In this document: positions 11,929-63,067 of the stretch, piece after piece
Layout of the letters: the number at the start of each line of letters is the position of its first letter
Position numbering within the stretch: position 1 is the first letter of the stretch
Sequence record: MW822008.1
Length of the DNA: 64,000 bases
Reading direction: 5' to 3' (one strand)
The notes under the pieces: model-generated
Told to the model about the DNA's origin: nothing
Seen by the model: the letters and a program-made list of their open reading frames with translations, nothing else
The model's database searches: none
Translations under genes and position numbers: made by a program

Positions 11929-11932
11929 TCTA

Positions 11933-13860: not shown

Positions 13861-13878
13861 AAATATTTGAAAAAGGGA

Positions 13879-14451: not shown

Positions 14452-14537
14452 GTATTGACAAAGTATCTTAGTACTGTATAATAGTTTACATCGAGAGGGG
14501 GAATGGTTCCCCTCCTAACAAAGAGAGAGAAATAAAA

Positions 14538-14720
14538 ATGGCTAAATGCACTATCTGCAAGAAAGAAATAGTATTAGTTCCAAGTGCCCGTGAACGTGCC
14601 GCTCGGTTCGGTGGCAAAGCGTCAGACTATACAAAAATGTTTACTACCCATGCAGCTTGCCAGGTAGCAAAACGTTCACAAGAAAGCGTAGAATTAATGC
14701 GTAAACTTTCCAAAAAATAA
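14538..14720 (+). CDS. Small zinc-finger-like protein
   Basis: CTIC...HAAC. Confidence 0.7.
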   Translation: MAKCTICKKEIVLVPSARERAARFGGKASDYTKMFTTHAACQVAKRSQESVELMRKLSKK

Positions 14721-14808
14721 GTATTGACAAAGTATCTTAGTACTGTATAATAGTTTACATCAAGTGAGGGGAAACGGTTCCCCTCCTAACAAAGAGAGAG
14801 AAATAAAA

Positions 14809-15132
14809 ATGGCTATGATCCTTGCCCAGAAAGTAGAACTGAAAATTGTAACCTCCTTTGACATTAAAGTTAATCGGTGGACTGATTCACACGGCAATAC
14901 TTACCACTCTTGCTACGTGTCCGCGTTAATTGGCGACCGCTGGGAAGACTTGGGACATGAAACCTTTACTTACGGTTACGGTACACAAGGAGAATACACG
15001 GGCTTGGAGATCATTAAAGAAACCGTTATAGGTTTCAACCCGAAAGAAAAAGTTATTCACCGCATCGAAAAAGAGATTAACAAAGAAATAACAGTTCGCT
15101 ACTACGATGTAAAACGTAAGAAAGACATGTAA
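14809..15132 (+). CDS. Early hypothetical protein, paralog of 8391
   Basis: Shared motifs with 8391. Confidence 0.85.
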   Translation: MAMILAQKVELKIVTSFDIKVNRWTDSHGNTYHSCYVSALIGDRWEDLGHETFTYGYGTQGEYTGLEIIKETVIGFNPKEKVIHRIEKEINKEITVRYYDVKRKKDM

Positions 15133-15227
15133 TAGAATCCATTTAAAGTACTATTTGACATTGCCCAGATAGTACTTTATAATAGACTCTAACTTGTAGT
15201 ACTAACTCAACTAATAGGATGTATACC

Positions 15228-15623
15228 ATGATTACTAAATTCTACGCTACCCGTGAAGCTGCCCGTATTGTTGCACGCGAGGAAGGAGCAGCATTTAAAG
15301 ACATGGGCAAAGATGCACCGAAAGGTCAACGCTGGGCCGTACAGTTCAAAGAAATCTCTGATATTGTGAATTCACCTGAGCCAGTACTAACAGCAGCAGA
15401 ACTAAAACGAGCGGATTTACTGGCGGCAGTACTTAACGCACAAGATGAATTTATCGCTGATTCTGATATCAAAGTACAGACAAACCATACCGCTTGGACT
15501 CACGCGGATCACCTGGCAAACCTTAAGCGTCCAAGTGAACTGGTTCGCAACCAGAAAGAGATCCGACACGACCGTAAGGGTAATCGTGTAACAGTATACA
15601 GTAAACGCCGCCAGGTTATCTAA
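15228..15623 (+). CDS. Early hypothetical protein, paralog of 2856 with a longer middle
   Basis: Shared N- and C-terminal motifs with 2856. Confidence 0.8.
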   Translation: MITKFYATREAARIVAREEGAAFKDMGKDAPKGQRWAVQFKEISDIVNSPEPVLTAAELKRADLLAAVLNAQDEFIADSDIKVQTNHTAWTHADHLANLKRPSELVRNQKEIRHDRKGNRVTVYSKRRQVI

Positions 15624-15645
15624 TAACTTGCAGTACTAACAACAC

Positions 15646-15670
15646 GGCGGGATCAGTTCCCGCCTTTTTT
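15646..15670 (+). terminator. Intrinsic terminator
   Basis: GGCGGGA/TCCCGCC plus T6. Confidence 0.85.
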
Positions 15671-15685
15671 ATAGGATAAACTAAA

Positions 15686-15940
15686 ATGATTAAGGTACAA
15701 CTATCTAAAGATAATATCTTGCGGGTACACTATAAAGCACCACAGAGAATCATCACAAAGGCCGTACAGCTTGCTAATGAGTTTATTAATGGTAACCTAT
15801 TACCAAGGAAGTTAAGCAACGGAAAACTGCGTGTAATCGATGTAGACACTAACAACAGAATAGTAATTGAGAACACAGGAAAGATAAACCTATATGAACA
15901 CCAACAATATAATAAGAAAATAAAACTAATATCACGTTGA
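15686..15940 (+). CDS. ParE/RelE-like toxin-fold protein (tentative)
   Basis: 84 aa, basic; KA..L...F..G...PR.L......I.V....R......G...L..H..YN pattern. Confidence 0.45.
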   Translation: MIKVQLSKDNILRVHYKAPQRIITKAVQLANEFINGNLLPRKLSNGKLRVIDVDTNNRIVIENTGKINLYEHQQYNKKIKLISR

Positions 15941-15993
15941 CAGTACTCAATTGTTTTAGTATTATGTACACATACCAACACGGGAGAAACAAA

Positions 15994-16212
15994 ATGAAAT
16001 TATCTAAAATCGAAAAGAAAACTATTGATGAAGCAGTTAAGCACGGTTATACCTTTCGTAATGATTCACATTTTACCAATTTTCAACAAGGCCAAAGGAC
16101 TATTAAAAAACTAATTGACAAAGGTTTATTAGTTAAAGTAGATAACGGTAACGGCATTGAGTATCAGCCAACCCAAGACGCATTATCTTTAAAGAAATAT
16201 GCAATTATCTAA
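15994..16212 (+). CDS. Early hypothetical protein (possible winged helix)
   Basis: ORF; TIKKLIDKGLL segment. Confidence 0.7.
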   Translation: MKLSKIEKKTIDEAVKHGYTFRNDSHFTNFQQGQRTIKKLIDKGLLVKVDNGNGIEYQPTQDALSLKKYAII

Positions 16213-16269
16213 TTGACAGTACTCAAATGTTTTAGTACTATATGTACATACCAACACGGGGAAAACAAA

Positions 16270-16512
16270 ATGATTACTTTAGAAAAACGTATCAAAGAAA
16301 CTACATCGCTGGTGGAACTGTTAACAGTACTGAAATGCCGTACTACTCGGTTTAGTACACCGGACTTTATTAATATGGTTGATGTTAACGGTCGTTATCG
16401 CATTGCAGTAGAACATGGAACAGCGAAAGTATTCAGTACTAAAAACACTAAGGAAGTGATTCACGCGGTTAGTGTGAAAAAAGTGGTTGCCATTGATAGT
16501 AAAGTACTGTAA
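16270..16512 (+). CDS. Early hypothetical protein
   Basis: ORF; promoter/leader duplicated from the 15994 gene. Confidence 0.75.
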   Translation: MITLEKRIKETTSLVELLTVLKCRTTRFSTPDFINMVDVNGRYRIAVEHGTAKVFSTKNTKEVIHAVSVKKVVAIDSKVL

Positions 16513-16543
16513 GATAGTTTCATTAACTCAAGGAGAACATGCA

Positions 16544-17128
16544 ATGCGTAATTATACTAAATTCATCCGTACCCTGTCAGAAATGGAAACCAACAAAGAG
16601 ATCCTTTCAGCTTGTCGGTTAGCTGGTCTGGAGATCATCGGTGCGGGTTCTTCCCGTATTGTATTCGCTTTAAATGATCGGTTAGTGATTAAGGTCGCCA
16701 ATTGTGATGCGGGTGTAGAACAAAATGAAACTGAATGTAAGGTATGGAATTTTTTAGACTATGACCGCCCTCAATTGAAACAGTACTTTGCAAAGGTGCA
16801 TATGCATTTATGCGATCCTGATAATATGTTTATCGTTATGGATCGGTTGAGTACTGCAAGCAAAGGCAGTGTAAAGCACGTTAACGCGTGCAACGAATTA
16901 AAGTACAATATTAAACGTAATGCCATTGAACGCCAGCACCGCTTTGCTGATGCACTACAACACGTCGATGATACATTATCAACACTAACGATAAGAGATA
17001 TCAGAAAACAGAATATCGGCCAGGATCGTAATGGACTTATTAAAGTACTTGATTACGGTTTAACCCGCAATATCTGGAATCAGTACTATAAAAAGCGTGA
17101 TGTGGCAGCAAGTAAAGTAACACGATAA
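16544..17128 (+). CDS. Protein-kinase-like enzyme
   Basis: IGAGSSRIVF Gly-loop, VIKVA Lys, NETE alphaC Glu, RDIRKQNIG catalytic loop, VLDYG. Confidence 0.85.
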   Translation: MRNYTKFIRTLSEMETNKEILSACRLAGLEIIGAGSSRIVFALNDRLVIKVANCDAGVEQNETECKVWNFLDYDRPQLKQYFAKVHMHLCDPDNMFIVMDRLSTASKGSVKHVNACNELKYNIKRNAIERQHRFADALQHVDDTLSTLTIRDIRKQNIGQDRNGLIKVLDYGLTRNIWNQYYKKRDVAASKVTR

Positions 17129-17146
17129 AAAAGATTAAAAAAGGGA

Positions 17147-17235
17147 TTGATTTCGGTCAGTCCCTTTGCTATTATATATTCATTGAGAGATAGCTCACTG
17201 ACCCACAGGGTGCATAAATGTATCTATTATATAAG
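17147..17235 (+). ncRNA. sRNA family 1 unit
   Basis: TTGATT-17-TATTAT; TGAG-AGATAG-CTCA hairpin; core CCCACAGGGTGCATAAATGTATCT (17202-17225). Confidence 0.6.
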
Positions 17236-17351
17236 TATTCAGTACTGAAAACTATTTTTAAAAAGTACTTGCATTGTACTTAGAATCAAGTATAATGTTT
17301 TATATCGAGAGGGGGGGAACGGTTCTCCCTCAAAGAATAAGGAATAAAATC

Positions 17352-17573
17352 ATGACTACAATGACTTGCATTTACGCTTCCAATCTTCTGAATGATGCGG
17401 CCTTTAATGTTGATTCAGAATATCAATGTTATCGGGATGAAAATAAAAAAGTTTTTGTAGTTGATAATAATGGTTTCCATATTGAAATACAATCCGGCTT
17501 CACTGGTGTTGATGGTAAATCAGTATGGGGCGTACAGGATGATAACGGTACATATCATTTTAAACGTAATTAA
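17352..17573 (+). CDS. Early hypothetical protein
   Basis: ORF; start after hairpin. Confidence 0.8.
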   Translation: MTTMTCIYASNLLNDAAFNVDSEYQCYRDENKKVFVVDNNGFHIEIQSGFTGVDGKSVWGVQDDNGTYHFKRN

Positions 17574-17657
17574 GTATTGACAAAGTATCTTAGTACTGTA
17601 TAATAGTTTACATCAAGGGGAGAATAGTTCTCCCCGATACTAAAAGGAAACAAAATT

Positions 17658-17930
17658 ATGTCCAGCTACTCCGCTACTATGATCATTAAAGATATGAACG
17701 GTAATCCTACTTCCGCTGGTGGATCATTTGGAAACATTAATTTAGATGGTCGGTTATCCATGCAATCAGCCATCGATGCAGCGAAAGAAGTTTTTAAGAA
17801 TGAATGCACTGTAAGCAAGCTGGATTATATGGGATTCGCTATCGAGAAAACTAATCGTTTTGTGAACTACAAAAATCCACTGATGATTGATACTAACCTG
17901 AAAGCTAACGAAGTGGAATACTTATTATGA
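17658..17930 (+). CDS. Early hypothetical protein
   Basis: ORF. Confidence 0.8.
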   Translation: MSSYSATMIIKDMNGNPTSAGGSFGNINLDGRLSMQSAIDAAKEVFKNECTVSKLDYMGFAIEKTNRFVNYKNPLMIDTNLKANEVEYLL

Positions 17931-18118
17931 CAGTTGAAGAAGTTAAAAAAGTACTGGCAGTACTACGCTATCATAATCATTGCAAGGTGAAGAATGATCC
18001 TGATTATGTTGATTCATCCCTGGAGGAAGACACATTAAACGCAATAAGCCATATGCAAACATTAGCAAAGCGTATGACCGAAAAGAATAGACCGGACTAT
18101 ATCGGAAATAAAATTTAA
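17927..18118 (+). CDS. Early hypothetical protein
   Basis: ORF, ATGA overlap. Confidence 0.75.
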   Translation: MTVEEVKKVLAVLRYHNHCKVKNDPDYVDSSLEEDTLNAISHMQTLAKRMTEKNRPDYIGNKI

Positions 18119-18204
18119 AAAGTACTTGCATTGTAGTTAGATTAACGTATAATGTTTTACATAGAGCGGGGGAATAGTTCTCCCGCCAGTCCAGGAGATA
18201 CACC

Positions 18205-18468
18205 ATGAACACTATCGAAATCACTATCAATGCACACGTATACGACAACGTAGTACTGCAAACTACTATGACCGCTAACGATACCAGTACTTTGCGGAAT
18301 ACTGTTATTAGTGCCGTATGTGCCGCTATCGGTGATGTCGCCCTGGAAAATGCAAAACACGTAAACGATGGTTTCACTATGTGCAAACGTGATAACGCAA
18401 AACATATCATCGTGGAAGGTTACGGCGGTGTAGAATTTAATGTTTATATGAAAAAAGTACTTGCATAA
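18205..18468 (+). CDS. Early hypothetical protein
   Basis: ORF, AGGAG RBS. Confidence 0.8.
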   Translation: MNTIEITINAHVYDNVVLQTTMTANDTSTLRNTVISAVCAAIGDVALENAKHVNDGFTMCKRDNAKHIIVEGYGGVEFNVYMKKVLA

Positions 18469-18535
18469 TAACTAAAACAAAGTATAATGTTTTGCATAGG
18501 GGGAGATGTCCTCCCCCACTAAAAGGAGTAATAAA

Positions 18536-18760
18536 ATGGCTAACTTTGATGAACTGATGCGGGAAGTAGCTAACCTGGCAGAAGAGAAAAAATCATTCGA
18601 TTCTATCTATAACACCTCTTACCGTGATTCAGTACTGGCATGTAACCAGGATCAAAAAGATGAACTAATCGCCACCTATCATGAAGCATGGAAGTACTAC
18701 CGACAATGGGAGAAAGAAGAAAGAGAGTCTACCATTGACGGCCTCAATAATCTAATCTAA
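18536..18760 (+). CDS. Early hypothetical protein
   Basis: ORF, AAGGAG RBS. Confidence 0.8.
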   Translation: MANFDELMREVANLAEEKKSFDSIYNTSYRDSVLACNQDQKDELIATYHEAWKYYRQWEKEERESTIDGLNNLI

Positions 18761-18836
18761 AAGTTTTATTTCAGTACTATTGACATAGCTTGATAGTACT
18801 GATGTAATAACTTTACTAACTACAAGGGGAAACATC

Positions 18837-19094
18837 ATGGAACAATTCACACAATATCGGGTAAATCCTCAAGCTATGGCCTACGTAGAAGACCATAAAA
18901 CGTTACCAGTACTGCAACCAGTTAAAGGCCATATCTATCGTGCAATGTCGTGGAGTACGGCCCAGGATGGCTATAAAACCGTAGCCGTTGGTATGTACTG
19001 CGGTAATGGTGAATGGTTTGATCCAAATAATCCGGTAGCCATTGACAGTACTGAAAAAATGAAATGGGCCGACTACATCGAAGATATTTCATAA
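18837..19094 (+). CDS. Early hypothetical protein
   Basis: ORF. Confidence 0.8.
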   Translation: MEQFTQYRVNPQAMAYVEDHKTLPVLQPVKGHIYRAMSWSTAQDGYKTVAVGMYCGNGEWFDPNNPVAIDSTEKMKWADYIEDIS

Positions 19095-19113
19095 AAAGAA
19101 TAAAAAAAAGGAG

Positions 19114-19195
19114 TTGACTTCGGTCCGCTCCTTTAGTACTATATACGCATAGAAACAAATCAGCCCACAGGGTGCATAAGTGTATCCAAAATATA
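19114..19195 (+). ncRNA. sRNA family 1 unit
   Basis: TTGACT-17-TACTAT; core CCCACAGGGTGCATAAGTGTATCC (19164-19187). Confidence 0.6.
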
Positions 19196-19336
19196 TAGTT
19201 AATAACGGTGAGTAACTATCTGCTGGTGGAACTAAAACTATTAATAAAAAAGTATTGACAAAGTATATCAGTACTGCAATAATGTATCTCGTAGGGCGGC
19301 AATGGTGCGACGGCCCACAAAGTTAGGAGATTCAAA

Positions 19337-19669
19337 ATGAGTACTTCAATCGCTATCGTTAAAGCTTTCATCCGTACCAATGTTTCATCTGTATTCATCG
19401 ACGGTCTGGATCGGGAAGTAGAATACTCAATCATTATCGCACAGACTGCAAACGGTGCTCGGTATATCCTTAATGATAGTGAAGCAAATCACTACTACTT
19501 CACTAAAGCTACTGGCTTTAAACGCATCGATGCTGATGTAGTATACGCTAAGATGAATAAGCTGGTAGACAAGATTAACGCTAAAGGTACTATAGATTTA
19601 CAGTACTGGACCGAAACCGATCCAGAATATGGATCTCACCGCTACCTGAATCCAGGTATTAAAATGTAA
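19337..19669 (+). CDS. Early hypothetical protein
   Basis: ORF, AGGAG RBS. Confidence 0.8.
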   Translation: MSTSIAIVKAFIRTNVSSVFIDGLDREVEYSIIIAQTANGARYILNDSEANHYYFTKATGFKRIDADVVYAKMNKLVDKINAKGTIDLQYWTETDPEYGSHRYLNPGIKM

Positions 19670-19758
19670 AAAGTACTTGCATAGTACTTAGAATCAAGTA
19701 TAATGTTTTACATAGAGAGGGGGAAATGGTTCTCCCTCCTAAATTAAGGAGTTTTATC

Positions 19759-20160
19759 ATGACCTTCTCAATCAATTCCTTCGCTGACGTTTTAGTACTG
19801 GCTCGGACTTTCGGTAAAGATGCACTGGAGTACGCTGTAAGTAATGGCACTATCCAACCGGAACAGTGCCGCATCATTGGAAACTGCAAACGTTGGGCGG
19901 TATCCAATACTATTGCACTGGAAAACTTCCACGATGGCAACAATGAATATTCTGTTGATGTAGTATTCGAAGCCGTTGATCTCGGCGGTATCTATAATAC
20001 TAACCTGAATGATGTGCGTATCGTTCGCACGGGGTTCGGTGCTTATGATGTATCTATCCGTGAAGCTATGGACAACGGATACATTAGCAAGGACTTACTT
20101 GCTCACATCATGCAGCTGTGTACGGAACGTAACGAAGCACGCACTATCTTAGGACTGTAA
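19759..20160 (+). CDS. Early hypothetical protein
   Basis: ORF, AAGGAG RBS. Confidence 0.8.
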   Translation: MTFSINSFADVLVLARTFGKDALEYAVSNGTIQPEQCRIIGNCKRWAVSNTIALENFHDGNNEYSVDVVFEAVDLGGIYNTNLNDVRIVRTGFGAYDVSIREAMDNGYISKDLLAHIMQLCTERNEARTILGL

Positions 20161-20228
20161 GCGTTACACATCACCAAACATCATAGGCCGCCTTGTAGCG
20201 GCCTTAACTATATCAGGAGTACATACAT

Positions 20229-20438
20229 ATGTTCTATACAGTATACAGCGTTCTAGGTACTATTGCAGGCGTACATGATAACGTCAATGATGCTATGCGT
20301 ACAGTACTGCAACAGGTTCCACTAAAGCCTAAGACCATTAAGCAGATGACAGCACGACTAACCAGGGCGACCGATGGCGTGGAAGTATGGCAGGACTACG
20401 GGGATACACAGATAATCGTTAGCGTAACGAAGGATTAA
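20229..20438 (+). CDS. Early hypothetical protein
   Basis: ORF, AGGAG RBS. Confidence 0.8.
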   Translation: MFYTVYSVLGTIAGVHDNVNDAMRTVLQQVPLKPKTIKQMTARLTRATDGVEVWQDYGDTQIIVSVTKD

Positions 20439-20466
20439 TGCGTAAAGGGATCTAGTACTGATTCAG

Positions 20467-20720
20467 AAAAAAGTCAAGGCGTTTTTAAAATTATGCGTTA
20501 AAAAAATGCATAGGTAATCCCTTGACTTTTTTGAAATAAAAGGGATTGGACTATGGCAAAATGCGTAGGGGGCTAAAGGGCGGGTAACCTTTAGCGACTT
20601 CGAAAAAAGGAGTGATAGGGGCTTGACTTTTTATATAATTCTGATAATATATAGTCTATATTATATTTCATTCATATTTTATATGTTAGTTACATTAACT
20701 CAACTTTAGAGGTCACCGAA
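20467..20720. other. Non-coding boundary: inverted repeats then a very AT-rich tract (probable terminal-repeat junction)
   Basis: 13-bp IR 20467-20479/20520-20532; hairpin 20572-20595; base composition drops in GC afterwards. Confidence 0.5.
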
Positions 20721-20722
20721 CT

Positions 20723-21088
20723 ATGAATCCATCATCTAATAAATGTGGTACTTCCTTTAATGTAGAATGGTTGTTTTTTAAACCTACATCTACTATAAAA
20801 TCATTCATTGCTGATATCACTGAAGCACCTGACACCCTTGTATCAGTTGTTAGCAACAATAACGAAATGGTATTTTCTATTGATGAAAATCAATATGCAG
20901 ATATCTATTCATTGATTCGTATAAAAAACTTAGTTGTACTGTCCGAGAAAGCGTTCGCAAAAGAAGCGAAGAAATGGGATTTTAAACTTCCTATTGAATT
21001 GGTACGTGAAATACAAAAATTGGGATGTACTACTATTGAGAATTGTAAAGACTCACGTGCTACTGGGAATATTTCATTTGAAGTATAA
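20723..21088 (+). CDS. Hypothetical protein
   Basis: ORF, GAGG RBS. Confidence 0.75.
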   Translation: MNPSSNKCGTSFNVEWLFFKPTSTIKSFIADITEAPDTLVSVVSNNNEMVFSIDENQYADIYSLIRIKNLVVLSEKAFAKEAKKWDFKLPIELVREIQKLGCTTIENCKDSRATGNISFEV

Positions 21089-21111
21089 TGCATTTATATG
21101 AACAAAACATC

Positions 21112-21140
21112 TTGACATCATGCCTCACATGGGGTATGAT
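21112..21140 (+). promoter_or_regulatory. sigma70 promoter heading the family A array
   Basis: TTGACA-17-TATGAT. Confidence 0.75.
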
Positions 21141-21174
21141 GTTTTTTCACATATGAACCTATGGATTTTATCCT

Positions 21175-21372
21175 ATGCGTATTTTAACTAAAGAACAGCA
21201 CCACGAAAGACTTATCAATAACATGGCTATGATAATGTATAAGTCCCATGACCGTGGTATTGCCTATAAGCGTGAATTAATTATGGCACTATTCATTGGA
21301 ACTAACTTTCAGGAAAGGTATGTCAACGATTGGATTTGGTATTTAATTGAAGATATAACGAGTAAACTATGA
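21175..21372 (+). CDS. Family A paralog
   Basis: FIGTNFQE. Confidence 0.85.
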   Translation: MRILTKEQHHERLINNMAMIMYKSHDRGIAYKRELIMALFIGTNFQERYVNDWIWYLIEDITSKL

Positions 21373-21569
21373 AAATGCGTATTTTAAATAAAGAAGAATA
21401 TCAATCACTGTTACGTAAAAACTTCACAAAGATTTATAATACAGACACACACGTAGAACGAATGGAGTTATACCTTTTGATTACTTTGGGAACTAACTAT
21501 CAGGAAAGATGGGTGATTCAATATATGGATACATTGAAAAATAAAATATTGTCCACGAGGAAACAATGA
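21369..21569 (+). CDS. Family A paralog
   Basis: TLGTNYQE. Confidence 0.85.
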   Translation: MKMRILNKEEYQSLLRKNFTKIYNTDTHVERMELYLLITLGTNYQERWVIQYMDTLKNKILSTRKQ

Positions 21570-21775
21570 AAACTATAACACGAACCCAATCATACGGTCT
21601 TATCTTGAAATACATGGACTTAATGGTGGATATCAGCAAAGACCTTCCTAAAACTGAAATTGAAGTTGCAAGAGCAGAGATCCGCATGTTGGCTGTACTG
21701 AACACAAACCATCAGGAAGATTATGTTGAAGAATGGATTCGATTTTTAATAGAAGATATAAAGAGTAAATTATGA
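21566..21775 (+). CDS. Family A paralog
   Basis: VLNTNHQE. Confidence 0.85.
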   Translation: MKTITRTQSYGLILKYMDLMVDISKDLPKTEIEVARAEIRMLAVLNTNHQEDYVEEWIRFLIEDIKSKL

Positions 21776-21987
21776 TTATTATAGAAAACTCATATCAATA
21801 TACTGAACGCATCGCTGCCAGACAACTTGAAATCCTCATAATATACGAAGAGACTTCTGATTTAAACTTAGCCGAGGTATTGGAAAATGATATACTATTG
21901 GGTGCATTCTTAGGAACAGACTATCAGAAGTATTATGAGGAAAAGTATTTGTCATCTCTTGAGAAATATATCAGGAGCAAATTATGA
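21772..21987 (+). CDS. Family A paralog
   Basis: FLGTDYQK. Confidence 0.85.
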   Translation: MIIIENSYQYTERIAARQLEILIIYEETSDLNLAEVLENDILLGAFLGTDYQKYYEEKYLSSLEKYIRSKL

Positions 21988-22196
21988 TTTTTTTAACACC
22001 AGAAGAATATAAGAAACGTTTCAATTCCGCACAGGGTGAAATCTTACTTATATACCTTTCAAATGCAGACCTTAACTTATCAAGGGTATTAGAAAAAGAT
22101 TTACTTATGGGTGCATTCCTTGATACAGACTTTCAGGTGTATTATGTAGGGGAATACTTAATTGCACTCCAGAAATACATTAAGAGCAAACTATGA
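21984..22196 (+). CDS. Family A paralog
   Basis: FLDTDFQV. Confidence 0.85.
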   Translation: MIFLTPEEYKKRFNSAQGEILLIYLSNADLNLSRVLEKDLLMGAFLDTDFQVYYVGEYLIALQKYIKSKL

Positions 22197-22411
22197 AACA
22201 TTTAAGTAATTACGAGAAGAATAAAATTATCGTTGCTGCAATAAACAAATATTTTACACTTCCTCACACAGAAGGTTTATGTGTAAGGGAACACAGGATA
22301 AACACCACCGATATACGCATGATGGCTGTACTGGGGACGAACTTTCAGGAAGAGTATGTTGTTGCACACATAGTTGCCCTCACTGATTTAATAAGGGACA
22401 AATGCAAATGA
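22193..22411 (+). CDS. Family A paralog
   Basis: VLGTNFQE. Confidence 0.85.
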   Translation: MKHLSNYEKNKIIVAAINKYFTLPHTEGLCVREHRINTTDIRMMAVLGTNFQEEYVVAHIVALTDLIRDKCK

Positions 22412-22716
22412 AACACTTAACTGATGATGAATTTGAAACTATAATTCGTAAACTAACCCCCATCACAAGGATAGTCTACGGTGACCCCAGCCTTACATGG
22501 AACCAAATGCGAGCTAAAGTTAATGAGCTATGGTTGCTGTACTTTATGGGGACTCAATATCAAGATAAGTTTTGCACAGAATATATCGAACAATTAACGA
22601 ATGTTATACAGGATAAACTAGATGATTATTTGCTCACAAAACATGAAGATTTTATCAGGAGTGGAGTATCAGACTGCCCTCTTCTCTCTTCTAAACACCC
22701 TCCGCACGAACAATAA
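22402..22716 (+). CDS. Family A paralog with C-terminal extension
   Basis: FMGTQYQD. Confidence 0.8.
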   Translation: MQMKHLTDDEFETIIRKLTPITRIVYGDPSLTWNQMRAKVNELWLLYFMGTQYQDKFCTEYIEQLTNVIQDKLDDYLLTKHEDFIRSGVSDCPLLSSKHPPHEQ

Positions 22717-22894
22717 ACTTTATAATTCCCGTGAAGCTGATATCGTCAACGCTGATGTATATCTTAATAAATTCATAGGGACTAACTATCAAGAACTGTT
22801 CACTCTACGATATATCGCTGCATTGAGAAACGAAATATCAGATAAAACCCGTCAAGCCAGAAGAGAATGGAATAAACAATGCGACACAGACTAA
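22643..22894 (+). CDS. Family A paralog
   Basis: FIGTNYQE; start trimmed to MKILS. Confidence 0.8.
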   Translation: MKILSGVEYQTALFSLLNTLRTNNKLYNSREADIVNADVYLNKFIGTNYQELFTLRYIAALRNEISDKTRQARREWNKQCDTD

Positions 22895-23130
22895 ATCACA
22901 AAATGTATTGTAAACTATTACAGACACTGGCACAGAAACACTATGACACTGTATCTGAAATATTACCCTATGATATCATGCGTTTAATTCATAGTGAGGC
23001 AGAGATGCTTGTACTGATGACAGGCACTGATAAAAAAGCAATTGCCAAATCAATAGATATGTTCATCGAAGCACAATGTCAACACATTAGAACCGAGATA
23101 TGGAGACGAGAGAATGATAACACTAAATGA
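22879..23130 (+). CDS. Family A paralog (divergent)
   Basis: MTGTDKK. Confidence 0.7.
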   Translation: MRHRLNHKMYCKLLQTLAQKHYDTVSEILPYDIMRLIHSEAEMLVLMTGTDKKAIAKSIDMFIEAQCQHIRTEIWRRENDNTK

Positions 23131-23329
23131 GTTTCAGTATCATTGGAGGTTACAAACTATCAAATCAAAAGTGTATAGTATTGTGTTAAACAAATCTATT
23201 GCACAAGAGGACAAATGTGTTATAATAGCTGAAATGAAGTTGGGTGCTTTCGTAGGGACAAACTATCAAAACATCTACACTGACGTATTGTTAAGTGCCT
23301 TACGTAACAAGGTGGTATCCAAAATATGA
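23114..23329 (+). CDS. Family A paralog
   Basis: FVGTNYQN. Confidence 0.85.
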   Translation: MITLNEFQYHWRLQTIKSKVYSIVLNKSIAQEDKCVIIAEMKLGAFVGTNYQNIYTDVLLSALRNKVVSKI

Positions 23330-23544
23330 GAAATTTACAAGGCTTTGAATACATCAGACTCCTGAAAACATGCACCAGCAGAAGGAAAATCTTATCAAGC
23401 GATAAGAGCATCCAAGCTAACCTTAAGCACGCACTAGTAACTGAACTCTATGTAGGTGCACTCTTAGGCACAAACTATCAACAAATGTATGTAGATCTAT
23501 GGATTGACGCTCTACAGAAAGAGGTTAAAAGTAAATGCAAATGA
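23326..23544 (+). CDS. Family A paralog
   Basis: LLGTNYQQ. Confidence 0.85.
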   Translation: MRNLQGFEYIRLLKTCTSRRKILSSDKSIQANLKHALVTELYVGALLGTNYQQMYVDLWIDALQKEVKSKCK

Positions 23545-56719: not shown

Positions 56720-57568
56720 ATGTTAGACATTTCAGATTTTCTTAATTTTAAAAAGTATTCAGTACTTGAACATATCAACGAATTTCTGAATTCTACTACA
56801 CCATTTGGTATCAGTACATCAGATGCATACGATGGATATACAATCTTCCCATACAATGACTTTCAAATTTCCGTCAAAAAAGGTATTACAAAAGAAGTTG
56901 CAATTCGTGATGTAGTAATGTATAGCGATTCTTCTATTTCTTACTGTCATGATGTGAACAAGTTTGAATCTCTTGCAACACCTAATTGTTCATACTACAA
57001 ATCCCATGACACGATGATGTATAAAGAACAACATATCAATGGTGTTTCGTTCTATAAAACTAGCAGTGATAAATCATATACATCTAGAGATGATTTTGGA
57101 AAATACACATGTACTATGCACACGGATAATGAAAAAACAAATTACACTCATTCATTCGAGTCCAAATTCCAAGAGAGTGAAGTTTCAAATATCACTATAC
57201 AAGAACAGGTTTCAGAAGGCATTGTATATCGTAGCACTGCATTCTTTCGCATGAAAGATATTGCCACAGGCAGACCAATGATGTACAATATTGATATATA
57301 CATGAAAGGTGATATATCCGAAGTAGTGATTAGTACTGGTTATCGTGAAAAATATACAGTTACAATGGAATCACCAGATGCATCATTAGTTCACCTCTTT
57401 AACAATTTATATACATTCCAATTCGAACTTAGTTTCGATCCAAATGAATATCAAATATTTGATATATTAAAAAGTAATATTATTAATAAGTTAGAATATT
57501 ACTACAAGTTAGGTGGTAAGATGTGCATAGTTAATACTATGTTACATAACATAAAAGAAACATTATAA
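56720..57568 (+). CDS. Hypothetical protein
   Basis: Long ORF; GAGG RBS. Confidence 0.8.
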   Translation: MLDISDFLNFKKYSVLEHINEFLNSTTPFGISTSDAYDGYTIFPYNDFQISVKKGITKEVAIRDVVMYSDSSISYCHDVNKFESLATPNCSYYKSHDTMMYKEQHINGVSFYKTSSDKSYTSRDDFGKYTCTMHTDNEKTNYTHSFESKFQESEVSNITIQEQVSEGIVYRSTAFFRMKDIATGRPMMYNIDIYMKGDISEVVISTGYREKYTVTMESPDASLVHLFNNLYTFQFELSFDPNEYQIFDILKSNIINKLEYYYKLGGKMCIVNTMLHNIKETL

Positions 57569-57584
57569 ATCTGGAGGATTTGGT

Positions 57585-57878
57585 ATGGATACTAAATTCA
57601 AAATTATTTTTAAAACTAAGCCGTATATTCCACATACAGCAGAACGTTTTATACCACATGGTGCTGAGGAAATTATTCACCAAGATGGTACTAAGTTATA
57701 CCTTGTTCCTTGTTCTTATGAACGTGCAGTAGAAATGTTACTAATGAATGCTAGACTATGCAAAAACAAGTACATTAGTTACCTATACAATGAACATATT
57801 TTAGATTTCAATGATGAAAATATGTTCATTCTAGCAATCGAGGATTTTGATAACTGGTACAATATTATTAAAATCTAA
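57585..57878 (+). CDS. Hypothetical protein
   Basis: ORF, GGAGG RBS. Confidence 0.8.
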   Translation: MDTKFKIIFKTKPYIPHTAERFIPHGAEEIIHQDGTKLYLVPCSYERAVEMLLMNARLCKNKYISYLYNEHILDFNDENMFILAIEDFDNWYNIIKI

Positions 57879-57886
57879 TGAAAATA

Positions 57887-57925
57887 ATGTGAACATATTA
57901 GATTCTTGTGATATAATGTTCACAT
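57887..57925 (+). promoter_or_regulatory. Extended -10 promoter overlapped by an inverted repeat
   Basis: ATGTGAACAT/ATGTTCACAT arms around TGnTATAAT (57912-57917). Confidence 0.65.
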
Positions 57926-57949
57926 CTTTTTTTGATAACGGAGATATAG

Positions 57950-58336
57950 ATGAATACAAGTTCAATCCTAAAAGCAATTGGTGGTGTTTTACTCATTGAA
58001 GTAAAAGGTGAGCCAAAGCTATGCTGTTTAGAAGATATGAAGAATACAAAACACTTCAGTACTGGTCAGATTTTCAATGCCATTCGTATTCTAAATGACA
58101 AATCCATTGCTGATTATGGAAAAGTTTGGCCTGTATATCAAAATGCTGATGGTGATATCAGTACTGATTGGAAAACAATTGAGGCGGTACGACAAAGTTG
58201 TGAGAGTGATTGGGACTTCATTGTTGAAGTTTGTGATCAACTACAAGAAGATGTTCCAGAAATTGTCGAACGAAAAGAAGTCCTAGCACGACTTGAAAAA
58301 TTCCGTCACGGAACACTACAGTATAACACAATCTAA
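57950..58336 (+). CDS. Hypothetical protein
   Basis: ORF, GGAG RBS. Confidence 0.8.
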   Translation: MNTSSILKAIGGVLLIEVKGEPKLCCLEDMKNTKHFSTGQIFNAIRILNDKSIADYGKVWPVYQNADGDISTDWKTIEAVRQSCESDWDFIVEVCDQLQEDVPEIVERKEVLARLEKFRHGTLQYNTI

Positions 58337-58385
58337 TCTGCTTATTAAAAATATCTAATTAACATTATATAAAAGGAATTTAAAA

Positions 58386-58691
58386 ATGGAAGACAATGGA
58401 ATGAAATTTGATATGTTTGAAGGTGTACCAGAGTTCGATTTCAACAAACTTGAAGAAGGTGAGGAATCAGAACTAGTCAGTGTTACACTTAAAGCAGATT
58501 CTAAGAAGAAATATTCATCAGCAGTACGTTCACGTTCACAAGAAGAATACGAAACATTTATTGAAAGTATTCATTATGAAACATTCCATCATGCAGATGG
58601 AACTCCATATGAAGTACGTGTAACAGTACTGAAGCCTGAAGTAAATCCAATGGAAAATCTACGTCCTGTTTACTGCTGGGCAAGTCACTAA
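58386..58691 (+). CDS. Acidic hypothetical protein
   Basis: ORF, AAGGA RBS. Confidence 0.8.
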   Translation: MEDNGMKFDMFEGVPEFDFNKLEEGEESELVSVTLKADSKKKYSSAVRSRSQEEYETFIESIHYETFHHADGTPYEVRVTVLKPEVNPMENLRPVYCWASH

Positions 58692-58697
58692 TAAACC

Positions 58698-58730
58698 AAA
58701 GGACGGGATTTGTTATCTCGTCCTTTTTTT
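58698..58730 (+). terminator. Intrinsic terminator
   Basis: AAAGGACGGGA/TCTCGTCCTTT plus T-run. Confidence 0.8.
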
Positions 58731-58742
58731 GTCTGGAGATGT

Positions 58743-59597
58743 ATGAAACTTTATCTAATCGTTGACTACAATAAGGATTATGCTGGTAACTTCACCGAAG
58801 ATTCGGATGGATATTGCACATCGACTAATGTCAATGTACGTAGCAGTAGTGCTCATGAACATGAATCTTGTAAAAATCTAAAAGATTTTATCGCATACCG
58901 AGCATTTGAAAAGAACTTCTGCCGCAGTAGATATTCGAAGTTTGAGTACCCGTTAATTGATGTTCCTGATGATTTAATGTTCCAGTTAATGCTAACTGGA
59001 GTTCAAGATTATGATTACATAGCATATAATCATATTACTAAGAAAATTTATATTGGTACATCATCACATGACACTTCTATGTATGCATCATGCCCAGATG
59101 ATCGAATGAATGATAGAAAATCATACTATAGTGGATCAGTTGGTTTAAATGATTCATTAAATGAAAATTTATTCTTTGAGTATGTTTATGATTACCATCA
59201 TGAGAAAAAAGAACGTGAAGATTACTGTATAGCAATTGATAGTACTAATGGGTATGAAGACGTGAAAGAAGCACTTATGCCGTACATTATTGAAAAGTAC
59301 TACAAAGATTTTCAGTACTGTAGTAATTTTCTAATCAGAAATTCTATTATAATCGGTCGCCAATCTAGTGCATACTCTCAGTACTATAATGATTCACCAG
59401 TAGCATCGGCAAATGAAATGTGTGATATTTTACAAATTCCACGTGAAGATATGGCATTCATTTTTACATCTTTTATTGAAGATGATGAGTTGTATATTAA
59501 AAATAAACACCGTTTCATGCCAAGCAAGATTGAGGTTATTCGAAGTTTTAGTGTTGATATACTAACAAATTTCACAGAAAAAACCGAATATAACTGA
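58743..59597 (+). CDS. Hypothetical protein
   Basis: Long ORF; GGAG RBS. Confidence 0.8.
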   Translation: MKLYLIVDYNKDYAGNFTEDSDGYCTSTNVNVRSSSAHEHESCKNLKDFIAYRAFEKNFCRSRYSKFEYPLIDVPDDLMFQLMLTGVQDYDYIAYNHITKKIYIGTSSHDTSMYASCPDDRMNDRKSYYSGSVGLNDSLNENLFFEYVYDYHHEKKEREDYCIAIDSTNGYEDVKEALMPYIIEKYYKDFQYCSNFLIRNSIIIGRQSSAYSQYYNDSPVASANEMCDILQIPREDMAFIFTSFIEDDELYIKNKHRFMPSKIEVIRSFSVDILTNFTEKTEYN

Positions 59598-59625
59598 GAC
59601 AAATGATAAGTTAATGATATAATAT

Positions 59626-59660
59626 AAGGTGACAACATAATATGTTAGTCACCTTTTTTT
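59626..59660 (+). terminator. Terminator-like hairpin just after a TGnTATAAT (59615-59623)
   Basis: AAGGTGAC-AACATA/TATGTT-A-GTCACCTT plus T-run. Confidence 0.65.
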
Positions 59661-60170
59661 AATCCTGAAAGGTTCCCATAAGGAAATGATTAAAAGCCTA
59701 ATCCACTCGAAAATGTAGAGGGTAGATGAGTAGTCCTTTCAGTACGAACAGCAGATGAAACCCGTTAGATGATGGCATAGTTTGAACCACTCACGGCAAT
59801 GCGGCTGTATAAAGAACTCCAATAGGATAAAGAGAGTTCCTCGATAGACATATAAGGATCGCACCTTACCAATTATCTAAGGGAGATTTCATAAGAAATA
59901 TGCGGTCGGAATTATACAATATAGTTGCGTCCAAATTTTGTGAAATCAAATACAAGTACTGGTCATATGGTATTTGTATTATGTGTCGGGATGTTTAAGA
60001 CCGACGACCGTTGCTACAAGAACCGCGATAGAGAGAAACAGAGCAACCCGCTTTCGTCTCGTAAGAGAATTCGTGATATGAACTATGTGAAGGCCACCAG
60101 CGTCAAACTTTTTTGTTCTTTCCCCTGCGGGGGGGATGAAATATGCTCAAGCAAACCCCGTCAATATTAA
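59661..60170. ncRNA. Candidate large structured RNA (strand not established)
   Basis: About 510 nt with no credible ORF; GC-rich relative to flanks; many stems. Confidence 0.5.
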
Positions 60171-60276
60171 TTAAAAGAAAATAGTACTTGTAGAATTAGA
60201 CATGCGTAGCATGGTAATTCTACTGATGTTGATGAAATCAACGTCACGTATATTCATTGATGTTTCCATAGGAATA

Positions 60277-60822
60277 ATGATGGCATTTATTAGAAAAGAA
60301 AAAACTGTTACTTATAAAACTTTGAATTTTGATGATTGCATTAATCAATCACAAGACGAAGATATCTTTACTGGATATGTGGTTATTAAAGAAAAAGGAT
60401 GCATTTCTTATATAAAGGAATTGCAAAATGGAATTGAAGTGACTTCAGTTAAATTACTTCCTACTCAAAAACCAACAATATCAAAAGCCCAGTATGGTAA
60501 TTATTTTGAAGAAAGATATAGTAATAATTCAATAAGTGTTAAGGCTCATATTATTAAAGGAGAACTAGAAGGAGAATATAGAAAATACAACCCACAAGGA
60601 AAATGTGTTTGGGTTAAATACTTCAATTCAGGATATGATGTAACATCTGAAATTATAGAGTTCTTAGGTTTAAAATGTACCCCTGAGACTATTCACGATT
60701 ATAAGTTCAATACTGAAGAAGAGTTTAATCTGATGATGCGTTACGGTTCACATTTTAAATTTTTATATGAATATAACATTGACAGTAGTACTTTTGATAA
60801 GATAGTACACAACTGTCTCTAA
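60277..60822 (+). CDS. Hypothetical protein with one MORN-like repeat
   Basis: GELEGEYRKYNPQGKCVWVKYFNSG. Confidence 0.65.
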   Translation: MMAFIRKEKTVTYKTLNFDDCINQSQDEDIFTGYVVIKEKGCISYIKELQNGIEVTSVKLLPTQKPTISKAQYGNYFEERYSNNSISVKAHIIKGELEGEYRKYNPQGKCVWVKYFNSGYDVTSEIIEFLGLKCTPETIHDYKFNTEEEFNLMMRYGSHFKFLYEYNIDSSTFDKIVHNCL

Positions 60823-60838
60823 CAAAAGGAATTATATA

Positions 60839-61360
60839 ATGTCGAAGAAGGATGCTTCGAAAAAACATTCAGTACATTTTAGTACTGGAAAAGATAACTG
60901 GACAACTCCAAAGGATTTCTTTGAAGATTTGGATGAACTCTGGGAATTTACACTAGATGCAGCATGTGTCAAAGAAACTGCATTGTGTGATAATTTTTTC
61001 ACTCCAGAAGATGATTCACTGTCACAGGATTGGGGAAATAATATAGTTTGGTTGAATCCACCATATAGTGACTTGAAAACTTGGTTATCTAAAGCAGTAG
61101 ATGCATATAATAACGGGGCAACTGTAGTTATTCTTGTACCCTCAAGAACCGATACAATTGCTTTTCAGGATTATGCTGCTAAAATATGTGATTGTATTTG
61201 TTTTATTAAGGGAAGATTGAGATTTGGTATACCAGAAGAACCCGATAAGAAAACAGATTCAGCACCATTTCCTTCGTGTCTGATAGTACTGGATAAGTAC
61301 TTAACCACTGCTAAAATCAATTATCTTAAATCTCTTGGGTTGGTGATGAAGAATTTATGA
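60839..61360 (+). CDS. Phage N6-adenine DNA methyltransferase (Dam-type family)
   Basis: WTTPKDFF, FTLDAAC, VWLNPPYS (motif IV), VVILVPSRTDT. Confidence 0.9.
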   Translation: MSKKDASKKHSVHFSTGKDNWTTPKDFFEDLDELWEFTLDAACVKETALCDNFFTPEDDSLSQDWGNNIVWLNPPYSDLKTWLSKAVDAYNNGATVVILVPSRTDTIAFQDYAAKICDCICFIKGRLRFGIPEEPDKKTDSAPFPSCLIVLDKYLTTAKINYLKSLGLVMKNL

Positions 61361-61890
61361 AAGAAACATGCGTATTAACTTTTGGACGTGTTAATCCCGT
61401 ACATCGTGGACATGGTTTAGTTTTTGAAAAGGCCAAAACATTACAAGAACAGTACAATGCTGATTTAAAAATATATCTAAGCACCAGTACTGACAATATA
61501 AAAAACCCACTCCCACCTGAACTAAAAATGTATTATACAGAGGGATTCTATCCTTCAGTGCAAGAGAACATCTACACAGAAGACAATCTATTTGATATAA
61601 TGAGAGAACTGGATGGAAAGTACTTAGATGTTCTTTTCATATGTGGTTCTGACCGTATTGATTCTTTTCAAAAAACTCTTGACATGTACAATGGTAAGTT
61701 GTATAATTTTTGTAGTATAAAAGCAATTCAAGCAGGTATTGACCGTAATGTAAGTCAATATAGCTCAACACAAATGCGTAACTTCGCAAAAAATGAAGAT
61801 TTTGATAGTTTTCGTGAGTTTTTACCTGGAAATGACGAGGACTTAAAAATACAATTATTTGAAGACGTTATAAAATACATGAGGAAATAA
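61357..61890 (+). CDS. HIGH-superfamily nucleotidyltransferase (cytidylyltransferase-like)
   Basis: TFGRVNPVHRGH, CGSDR, YSSTQMR. Confidence 0.85.
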   Translation: MKETCVLTFGRVNPVHRGHGLVFEKAKTLQEQYNADLKIYLSTSTDNIKNPLPPELKMYYTEGFYPSVQENIYTEDNLFDIMRELDGKYLDVLFICGSDRIDSFQKTLDMYNGKLYNFCSIKAIQAGIDRNVSQYSSTQMRNFAKNEDFDSFREFLPGNDEDLKIQLFEDVIKYMRK

Positions 61891-61892
61891 TT

Positions 61893-62186
61893 ATGTCAGT
61901 ACTGTTCAAAACCAATCCAGTACTTTGGGATCAAAATGAGCAATCAGGATTTCGTTCCATCCATGTTGAATACAAAGGTAATACTGTAGTTGCAATTATT
62001 GCTAACAAAACTCTAGGAAACTGGACTGCACAGGTTGTTCCTATGGGATATTCTTACACATCTGATGAGGTTCAATTCCTGGCTGAACTATATCGTCAAG
62101 TGCCGTTTATCATTAATGTACTAGAAGGTAATGATACATTATCACATGCAGATGTGATTAATTTTCTTGGAAACTTGCATGTGTGA
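61893..62186 (+). CDS. Hypothetical protein
   Basis: ORF. Confidence 0.75.
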   Translation: MSVLFKTNPVLWDQNEQSGFRSIHVEYKGNTVVAIIANKTLGNWTAQVVPMGYSYTSDEVQFLAELYRQVPFIINVLEGNDTLSHADVINFLGNLHV

Positions 62187-62466
62187 TGAAATAAATCTTA
62201 CAGGATATTTTTTACAAGAATCAATGATTAAATTTAGTGATAAATTTTCAGTACTGGATGGTATCGAAATGTGGCATGTCAAACCACTGTTCCACACTTT
62301 CAGTAAAGAGCACAAAATGTTATTGACTGAAGCCAGTAAATCAAATAACATATGTGAAATCAAAATTGGTGTAAATGTCTATAAAGGGATGGTTATCTTT
62401 TTTGACAATAACAGCAACTACTTTTATATTGTTAAGGAGCATTACGTTGACAAATACAAATACTAA
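62179..62466 (+). CDS. Hypothetical protein
   Basis: ORF; start trimmed. Confidence 0.7.
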   Translation: MCDEINLTGYFLQESMIKFSDKFSVLDGIEMWHVKPLFHTFSKEHKMLLTEASKSNNICEIKIGVNVYKGMVIFFDNNSNYFYIVKEHYVDKYKY

Positions 62467-63067
62467 TACATATTTCCGTTATCTTCGATTAGGTCTTTCC
62501 CTACGTCCGATCCGTGGAAAGTGCGATTCACTCGCTGACCTTGACTATGCATATGCATTACATCATGAAGGTGTACAGTATGTATTGGGTGATTATGGTG
62601 AATTTGAAGAAACAAATGACAGTACTGGAATTAATGCTGGTGTAGAAAATCTTAACAACATTGCTAACAGTTCTCGCCATGACATTGTGTTACAGATTCA
62701 AAACTTTATTGAGCAACACACAGGCAAACGTGTTTGGTGCTATGTCGGTACTGATGCACAAATGTCAATTTCATTCGGTAACGATGAAGGATATGTTGCA
62801 CAGCTTATTATGGATTTTGAATCTGAAGAGAAGTTTTTAGAATTCAAAGAAAAGATTATTCAGTCACTTGTTGATATGGGTATCCCCGAAGATAAAATGC
62901 CAGAAGTTCAAAACATTGATGAATTTGTTTTGATTCCATCTGATGAGAAATATGATGCAATGTTTACTGCTCTTAATATTCCAGGAGTTATTGTGGAGTA
63001 CTTTGATGATGGTGATGATAGTATCTATATCGATCTAGATGACGATGACGATGACGACGATGAATAA
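62447..63067 (+). CDS. Acidic hypothetical protein with poly-Asp tail
   Basis: TTG start 7 nt after AAGGAG, in frame with track ORF 62375. Confidence 0.75.
   Translation: MTNTNTNTYFRYLRLGLSLRPIRGKCDSLADLDYAYALHHEGVQYVLGDYGEFEETNDSTGINAGVENLNNIANSSRHDIVLQIQNFIEQHTGKRVWCYVGTDAQMSISFGNDEGYVAQLIMDFESEEKFLEFKEKIIQSLVDMGIPEDKMPEVQNIDEFVLIPSDEKYDAMFTALNIPGVIVEYFDDGDDSIYIDLDDDDDDDDE

Follow-up and report, generated by a model that had tools for sequence, protein, structure and literature searches.

A predicted family of large pseudoknotted RNAs in Rak2-like jumbo phages and in integrative islands of Enterobacterales

Few gene products of bacteria and phages are as poorly understood as the large ornate RNAs, among them GOLLD, ROOL and OLE, and with every new class work on structure and function has become possible. 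A passage of PMC7567579 cites GOLLD as accumulating in lytic growth, and both GOLLD and ROOL form RNA-only multimers (bioRxiv 10.1101/2024.12.08.627333). The subject of the present analysis is an unannotated element at positions 59,595-60,223 (plus strand) of the window, which is the whole 64,000-nucleotide (nt) stretch analysed and is identical in sequence to bases 1-64000 of the 383,493-bp genome of Escherichia phage BF17 (MW822008.1; Asteriusvirus). Like GOLLD and ROOL, this element falls in the size class of about 0.5-0.8 kb, is rich in helices and pseudoknots, is associated with phages and has a promoter of its own. It is unlike them in that the model of neither matches its family, in that four to five diverged paralogs occur per genome without adjacency to tRNA genes, and in its residence in jumbo phages and chromosomal islands of Enterobacterales. 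The element is copy 1 of an undescribed RNA family of Rak2-like jumbo phages and small integrative islands of Enterobacterales, and comparison of the homologs securely predicts a stand-alone, stable and pseudoknotted non-coding RNA (ncRNA) gene of a new family, roughly 0.56-0.6 kb in length. No earlier description of the family was found in the literature, overlap with the 10,006 unnamed viral candidates of PMC10690425 being unchecked.

Other phage-related transcripts which invite comparison were found by RNA sequencing. The ICP1 RNA (about 800 nt), the PLE IIR transcript and ncRNA001-004 of PA5oct are highly transcribed, free of open reading frames and 0.2-0.8 kb long (PMC7567579, PMC7318152), and PA5oct belongs to the wider Rak2-like group, as do the phages which carry the new RNA. 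Of the covariance models of a 5' and a 3' domain of the new RNA, neither matches ncRNA001-002, the 3' model matches none of ncRNA001-004, nothing below an expectation value (E) of 0.3 appeared among the PA5oct ncRNAs with filters off, and a default search of PA5oct 7500-23500 gave no match with either model. For the ICP1, PLE and PA5oct RNAs no structure or covariation has been reported, in contrast to the new family. The prohead RNA of phi29 resembles the new RNA in being phage-encoded and structured, and its covarying loop-loop pairing was at first read as a pseudoknot; it is part of a DNA-handling machine, about 170 nt long and single-copy, and has no sequence or model similarity to the new RNA. 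To propose a packaging role for the new RNA by this analogy would be pure speculation.

The element lies in a gap of 682 nt without annotation, between hypothetical genes at 58743-59597 and 60280-60822, and extends from a promoter to a 3' hairpin. A preliminary description of the same DNA had placed a possibly new large RNA at 59615-60170; the location proved correct, while the 3' end had to be moved by about 50 nt, up to a hairpin at 60190-60223. Its statement that the guanine and cytosine (GC) content exceeds that of the neighbouring coding sequence holds as well, with a fraction of 0.36-0.44 over 59600-60200 versus about 0.28-0.33 in the flanking genes, and so does its failure to see a credible reading frame. 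The longest open reading frame in the element has 81 amino acids (59925-60170, TTG start). The family alignment, on which this and all following family counts are based, comprises 37 non-redundant full-length sequences after clustering at 97% identity, and the region homologous to this frame is open in just one of them. No open frame is conserved among the 37 members, whose longest frames have a median of 50 amino acids and vary in strand and frame.

Known families did not account for the element. Rfam 15 was searched with its 4227 models, including GOLLD, ROOL, RNase P, tmRNA, 6S, group I and group II introns and the hammerhead, and at gathering scores none matched anywhere in the window. At E up to 10 the stretch 59400-60400 yielded small nucleolar and small regulatory RNA noise only, at 27 bits or less and all on the promoter and terminator stretch, and six homologs searched at E up to 5 gave noise only, outside the core. 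RNase P was rejected as a candidate, with no model match at E up to 10 and with AACCCGCTT-like strings that lie in a local hairpin and a pseudoknot and not in a long-range P4. A hammerhead was likewise rejected: GATGAG...CGAA does flank helix 3 of the fold listed below, but this helix and helix 2 are local hairpins that follow one another, and the GAA varies, with CGCAG and CGTTG among the members. The conjecture of a possibly new large RNA is thus supported by covariation, by transcript contigs and by the lack of an Rfam family.

As the folding energy of the single sequence is unexceptional (z = -0.93 for the plus strand, -0.11 for the minus strand), stems by themselves prove nothing and the structural case rests on covariation. 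This proved to be very strong in two domains which were modelled independently, the 5' domain (59689-59887) and part of the 3' domain (59945-60107), and is complemented by three covarying pseudoknots. RNAalifold predicted 75 pairs from the 37 sequences, 49 of them with changes on both sides that keep the pairing. In the alignment to the 5' domain model 98.6% of the pair cells are standard and 21 of 30 pairs are compensatory, in that to the 3' domain model 98.5% are standard and 28 of 35 pairs are compensatory, so that compensatory changes are found in 49 of the 65 modelled pairs of both models together. The covariation score of the 5' domain was 0.52 versus 0.14 in shuffled alignments and 0.03-0.06 with the partners slid, and that of the 3' domain 0.61 versus 0.19 in shuffled alignments; in either case none of 500 shuffles scored as high, and sliding the partners by one to three columns left scores of 0.03-0.12 across the two domains. 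Many alternations between G-U and U-G are compatible with the plus strand only. The fold predicted in this way consists of about 13 helices and at least three pseudoknots, and it includes long single-stranded junctions that are invariant across the family alignment, which is typical of RNAs whose shape is the function. The features of the element, with the support for each, are as follows.

59595-59623 (+): promoter, made up of the -35-like box TGAGACA (59595-59601), 14 nt and the extended -10 TGATATAAT (59615-59623)
59628-59660 (+): hairpin GGTGAC...GTCACC with an inner AACAT/ATGTT stem, followed by seven T
59673-59685 (+): helix 1, small 5' hairpin; 5 of 5 pairs compensatory, some cells unpaired or gapped
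59698-59725 (+): helix 2, hairpin with the conserved loop GAAAATGTA, then invariant GATGAG; 5 of 5 modelled pairs compensatory
59730-59745 (+): helix 3, hairpin; 3 of 4 pairs compensatory, 100% paired
59748-59808 (+): helix 4, composite stem of ACAGC/GCTGT, conserved internal loops, CCGT/ACGG and a variable apical hairpin (59771-59792); 5' domain model
59814-59839 (+): helix 5, GAACTC/GAGTTC (59814-19/59834-39); 6 of 6 pairs compensatory, up to four pair types
59853-59868 (+): helix 6, TAAG/CTTA (59853-56/59865-68), its loop in pseudoknot B; covariation
59877-59884 (+): invariant single-stranded TAAGGGAG; the TAAGGGA positions unchanged in 37 of 37
59886-59940 (+): variable region with the hairpin ATTTC/GAAAT (59886-99), the 3' strand of pseudoknot B and an optional module; alignment
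59949-59980 (+): helix 8, 13-bp hairpin (59949-61/59968-80), its loop in pseudoknot A; 13 of 13 pairs compensatory
59984-60006 (+): helix 9, GTCG/CGAC (59984-88/60002-06); 3 of 3 pairs compensatory
60010-60075 (+): core of the 3' domain with pseudoknot C, helices 10-12 and the invariant AGAAAC..ACCCGCTT; 3' domain model
60024-28/60071-75 (+): helix 10; 3' domain model
60031-35/60051-55 (+): helix 11; 3' domain model
60058-67 (+): helix 12, CTC-GTAA-GAG with a GTAA loop; 3' domain model
60099-60165 (+): conserved 3' tail with AGCGTCAA, a T-run (60109-14), a C-rich/G-run hairpin (60121-33), ATGAAA and a second motif CCCGTCAAT; alignment
60190-60223 (+): 3' hairpin with a C(GTA)G triloop mini-hairpin (60201-60213); recurrence at the copies

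Pseudoknot A joins the loop of the 13-bp hairpin (59962-68) to 60076-60082; all seven positions are complementary in 36 of the 37 members, in at least ten different sequences, and six of the seven in copy 1 itself. In several members this loop is partly palindromic, which gives only a hint of multimerisation. In pseudoknot B the loop ATCGC of helix 6 (59858-62) pairs with GCGGT (59902-06) about 40 nt downstream, five of five positions being complementary in 22 members with at least eight different sequence pairs. Pseudoknot C is formed by GTTGC (60010-14) and GCAAC (60043-47), with five canonical pairs in every member and three of them covarying; for its sake the helix GTT/AAC (60010-12/60021-23) proposed by RNAalifold was dropped. 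A pairing of GATG (59725-28) with CGTC (60159-62), which shows no covariation and six U-U mismatches, was left out.

Most of the stems which had been noticed from the letters of this one sequence reappear in the comparative model. GAACTC/GAGTTC and the hairpin at 59949-59980 are backed by covariation, as are TAAGG/CCTTA, GTCGG/CCGAC and TCTC-GTAA-GAGA in the slightly shorter forms TAAG/CTTA, GTCG/CGAC and CTC-GTAA-GAG, and GTTGCT/AGCAAC corresponds to pseudoknot C. Two stems exist in copy 1 and carry less weight in the family: ATTTC/GAAAT falls in the variable region, where other members hold a different hairpin, and TCCCC/GGGGA is weak, as TCCC/GGGG (60121-24/60130-33) varies on one side only, with C or U opposite G, the G-run of this hairpin being invariant. 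The long-range pairing CGGTCG/CGACCG was rejected because compensation is lacking, the 3' partner being invariant and the middle position A-C in 14 of the 19 members that have the segment; its 5' segment pairs with the loop of helix 6 instead.

Several details of the alignment concern the periphery of the fold. The outer pairs CTA/TAG of helix 2 covary with CTG/CAG, and the apical hairpin of helix 4 covaries by eye (TGG/CCA, GGG/CCC, AGG/CCT, CGG/CCG). The optional module consists of a stem of the TTTTG/CAAAA type closing the conserved loop TACAATATAGnTnCGTC. It is seen at 59908-59940 of the window and, for copy 2, at about 1820-1860 of locus L003, with a loop of about 17 nt ending in CGTC, and depending on the member it is present at either or both of two peripheral sites, the second being inside helix 12 (copy 2 and several others); it behaves like a transposable structural module. 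A short motif of the CGTCA type occurs three to four times per RNA at apparently exposed positions, and in many paralogs an extra terminator-like hairpin with a T-run stands ahead of the C/G hairpin of the tail.

Evidence at the RNA level came from assembled contigs of four public runs, which were placed on 57500-62500. Two of the runs are wastewater metatranscriptomes, one is RNA sequencing labelled as a whole organism metagenome, and the fourth is DNA-like and covers the entire stretch. In the three RNA libraries the depth falls almost wholly on the element, at 1.3-19 in the three bins spanning 59671-60171, and the flanking genes show only a few scattered patches of low depth. One RNA-library contig (60033-60210) passes beyond 60171, and some RNA contigs have loose ends whose sequence matches paralogs 2 and 4. 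The contigs show presence in RNA pools and a relative enrichment, which is suggestive, and do not show ends or timing.

The promoter begins with a TGAGACA box overlapping the stop codon of the upstream gene, and the extended -10 and the adjoining hairpin which had been noticed directly upstream of the RNA are both present. TGRGACA-N14-TGnTAYAAT stands ahead of all four BF17 copies of the element, which are among about 20 sites of the BF17 genome, all on the plus strand; polymerase, primase, exonuclease, topoisomerase and nucleotide-metabolism genes and a tRNA-Ser are among the other genes it precedes; in other genera a TGAAAC-type box is found at identical spacing. The class matches the second promoter class of phage CBB, located upstream of DNA-synthesis genes (PMC5259590), and is probably the middle-type promoter of the phage. 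BF17 also encodes two sigma-70-family proteins. The hairpin at 59628-59660 looks like the terminator of the upstream gene, and the RNA would start at or inside it, at its 5' arm. The order of promoter, hairpin and T-run is kept in the syntenic copies of Munch, GAP32, CBB, fHe-Yen9-04 and XbC2. As an arrangement of its own, these 66 nt (59595-59660) hold the upstream stop codon, the -35-like box, the extended -10 and a terminator-like hairpin with its T-run, with the promoter 5' of the hairpin across genera (syntenic loci L009-L013). The probable 3' end of the stable RNA is the hairpin at 60190-60223. Each BF17 copy has a C(GNA)G-triloop hairpin downstream of the conserved tail, and the majority of the phage copies have an equivalent, as do the island copies that were compared. 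C(GNA)G hairpins of at least 5 bp number six on the plus strand of BF17, five of them at the four loci, and random genomes give one to four.

BLAST against phage genomes found the stretch in 62-71 records, at four to five places per genome, in jumbo phages of Escherichia, Salmonella, Erwinia, Yersinia, Serratia, Cronobacter, Pectobacterium, Xanthomonas and Klebsiella; further members were fetched from IMG/VR with a conserved 20-nt pattern. In BF17 there are exactly four copies, on which nhmmer at maximum sensitivity and the two covariance models agree. The three paralogs of the element lie near 115,445, 200,085 and 312,094 and are 72-83% identical to it over aligned blocks, and all four copies are on the plus strand in unannotated gaps. 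Klebsiella phage RaK2 has one diverged copy. The neighbour genes of the four BF17 copies are unrelated to each other; copy 3 lies between minus-strand genes, and copies 1, 2 and 4 have a same-strand gene 60-110 nt downstream. Pfam, PHROGs and PADLOC searches on the neighbours of phage and island copies revealed no common partner protein. Two genes 3' of the RNA a Dam-type DNA N6-adenine methyltransferase is encoded (60839-61360). In PP886230, PQ390715, PQ330092, OR699282, NC_042116 and other records the annotation places between one and five short hypothetical proteins across the homologous RNA locus, in part with ribosome-binding sites, and such proteins over RNA loci of deposited genomes are very likely spurious.

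A stricter pattern search in one genome per bacterial species returned 12 loci, nine of which are full-length family members by both covariance models (120-163 bits). They belong to Citrobacter amalonaticus, Enterobacter chinensis, Serratia fonticola (a complete chromosome), Serratia sp., Silvania, Buttiauxella and three metagenome-assembled genomes. At every bacterial locus the RNA lies in low-GC DNA (about 30-40%), and in eight 8-kb loci host DNA of about 50-60% GC is found within 0.5-4 kb. Four islands could be described.

Citrobacter: about 9.6 kb (L140 4310-13927), splitting the pilin gene ppdD; constant part with a large serine recombinase, the RNA, a CI-like S24 repressor, a Cro-like helix-turn-helix protein, four unknown genes and a small resolvase; cargo GmrSD
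Enterobacter: L142 5865-16417, with ppdD site, layout and constant part as in Citrobacter; cargo DarT-DarG and a UvrD-like helicase
Serratia fonticola: low-GC island adjoining rof and tilS, with the RNA at the island end by two ParB-like genes and a serine recombinase; no cargo seen in the locus
Escherichia coli LR-29-1: about 10.7 kb (L144 6974-17400), adjoining ffs; constant part with an IS3-disrupted tyrosine integrase, the RNA, unknown genes and a small recombinase; cargo DUF4326, DUF488 and a dual-OB protein

Taken together, these are low-GC integrative islands of one family, about 10 kb in size, which combine variable integrases and anti-phage cargo with a CI/Cro-type switch and a small resolvase; they are candidate satellites of jumbo phages. 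In E. coli the island was present in two of 5,426 complete genomes. Strains that bear an island include E. coli LR-29-1, Citrobacter amalonaticus P55 and Enterobacter chinensis 170198. The island copies retain the phage-type promoter and the 3' hairpins, and a maximum-likelihood tree places them at two or more points among the paralogs of the phages. The island proteins have no homolog in the BF17 genome, none of those tested is recognisable as a replication protein, PADLOC found nothing among 10 adjacent open reading frames tested in the Serratia and Citrobacter loci, and none of the 72,556 plasmids of PLSDB carries the RNA. Two further contigs deserve mention: DPOH01000171.1, a 2.8-kb contig binned as Clostridium sp. 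and probably mis-binned, holds an island-type copy near-identical to those of Buttiauxella and Enterobacteriaceae, and a 15.7-kb IMG/VR contig classed as viral (L035), whose member clusters with the island copies and not with the jumbo-phage paralogs, may be an excised or packaged island. Islands of the I55 type in Pseudomonas, which combine an integrase with defence cargo and lack transfer genes of their own, were found in 2025 to be transduced by a jumbo phage (PMC12595487). They differ from the enterobacterial islands in their tmRNA integration site and their intY, alpA and RadC/YqaJ genes, and no shared RNA is reported for them (PMC12595487).

As to function, the explanation tentatively favoured is an RNA which acts in trans by its shape and is tied to the replication or propagation stage of infection. 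The RNA would be made from the phage-specific promoter, whose class also drives replication genes, and would accumulate as a compact, nuclease-resistant particle; its three-dimensional shape would let it act in trans, either as a scaffold that binds proteins or as a ribozyme and not by base-pairing to mRNA, with a role in the replication or propagation stage, and the islands would retain a single copy as a means of using this phage machinery or of competing for it. What favours a shape-based function in trans is that the tertiary structure is dense, that the junctions are invariant and that the RNA apparently accumulates; the tie to replication or propagation comes from the promoter class and the island copies. 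Several points weigh against it. Both the function in trans and the 5' and 3' ends of the RNA are inferred, the four runs were selected because they hold the stretch and their contigs are strandless, so that the enrichment is suggestive only, and no partner protein emerged from the neighbouring genes. Furthermore, an origin or primer would account at least as simply for several features: four to five copies scattered over the genome, a promoter of the replication type, an invariant G-run with AT-rich sequence after it, C(GNA)G hairpins that are stable as DNA, and islands that have one copy each and no recognisable replication gene.

In phage T4 the origins oriF and oriG consist of a middle promoter and an R-loop-forming transcript, and several origins are present; the RNA II of ColE1 is a structured pre-primer of about 550 nt. 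The main rival explanation, possible and yet on the unlikely side, is built on these precedents, and some observations fit it as well or better: each copy would be an origin of a T4-like replisome, at which the middle-type promoter fires a structured transcript that persists as an RNA-DNA hybrid close to the G-run and the AT-rich tail and primes the leading strand, and C(GNA)G hairpins of the displaced strand help to load the primase-helicase, while the islands would carry a helper-type origin for amplification and packaging by an infecting jumbo phage. With these systems the new RNA shares a dedicated promoter of the replication-gene class, several dispersed sites per genome as in T4, a length like that of RNA II and a G-rich element followed by AT-rich DNA. 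The promoter is common to polymerase, primase, topoisomerase and exonuclease genes, and the C(GNA)G hairpins are nearly exclusive to the four loci. The islands, moreover, have no recognisable replication gene and yet in every case carry the RNA, which is transcribed towards the interior of the island, and islands of integrase and defence genes are known to be transduced by jumbo phages (PMC12595487). What speaks against an origin is that the origin transcripts known so far work without three pseudoknots and without dozens of unchanging bases in their junctions, that the new RNA is far more elaborate and sequence-conserved than those of T4 and ColE1 with no antisense regulator seen, that it appears from the RNA-library contigs to accumulate free and stable, that it is absent from the 72,556 plasmids, that the GC skew has no inflection at copy 1 and that all copies point one way. 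The preliminary description had named a replication origin and a decayed protein gene as readings opposed to an RNA; the latter is excluded, and an origin, at the modest probability given here, would be RNA-based.

Distinctly less probable is a decoy or sponge in the arms race of phage and host, in which the phage RNAs sequester a host defence or RNA-binding protein and the island copies are the original host-side partner or a counter-decoy. An abundant RNA in many copies would be well suited to titration, the repeated CGTCA-type motif is apparently exposed, and the islands carry defence cargo (GmrSD; DarT-DarG with the UvrD-like helicase), but the RNA resides in the constant island part by integrase or switch genes and not in the variable cargo, no defence protein is consistently adjacent, as the PADLOC result for the Serratia and Citrobacter loci illustrates, and nothing identifies a target. 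The remaining explanations, a 5' leader, a decayed gene or chance structure, are effectively excluded. A riboswitch-like cis-regulatory leader of gene 60280-60822, prompted by the same-strand genes close downstream of copies 1, 2 and 4, is very improbable: copy 3 cannot be a leader as it lies between minus-strand genes, the genes downstream of the four copies are unrelated, the RNA contigs end before the downstream gene, and size and pseudoknot content are far above those of known leaders. Least probable is the absence of any functional RNA, be it that a protein gene has decayed or that a repeated DNA element shows chance stems. The z value of only -0.93 and the up to five short hypothetical proteins annotated over the homologous stretch in some GenBank records would agree with this; it is contradicted by the 81-amino acid frame being open in one of 37 members, by 98.5% paired pair cells and 49 of 65 compensatory pairs which the controls do not match, by strand-specific wobble pairs and by the contigs in RNA libraries.

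The islands have no protein homolog in BF17 and yet share the RNA, which suggests that jumbo phages and candidate satellites are linked at the level of RNA. It is conceivable, if rather doubtful, that the RNA is the shared handle by which Rak2-like jumbo phages are linked to satellite islands of Enterobacterales, as a family not recognised before; such islands of about 10 kb, defence-carrying and without replication or structural proteins, would hold one helper-type copy of the phage RNA locus, as origin/primer or machine-associated RNA, and infection would switch on their amplification and their transfer in jumbo capsids. A practical consequence concerns the spurious short proteins annotated over the RNA loci in many deposited genomes. 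The comparative data are unusually rich, with four to five ancient paralogs per genome, many genera and three covarying pseudoknots, and the RNA is carried by the cultivable E. coli phages 121Q, PBECO4, phAPEC6 and BF17, which allow its deletion. If it is true that the RNA marks origins, it would offer the first handle on how replication starts in these 350-kb genomes.

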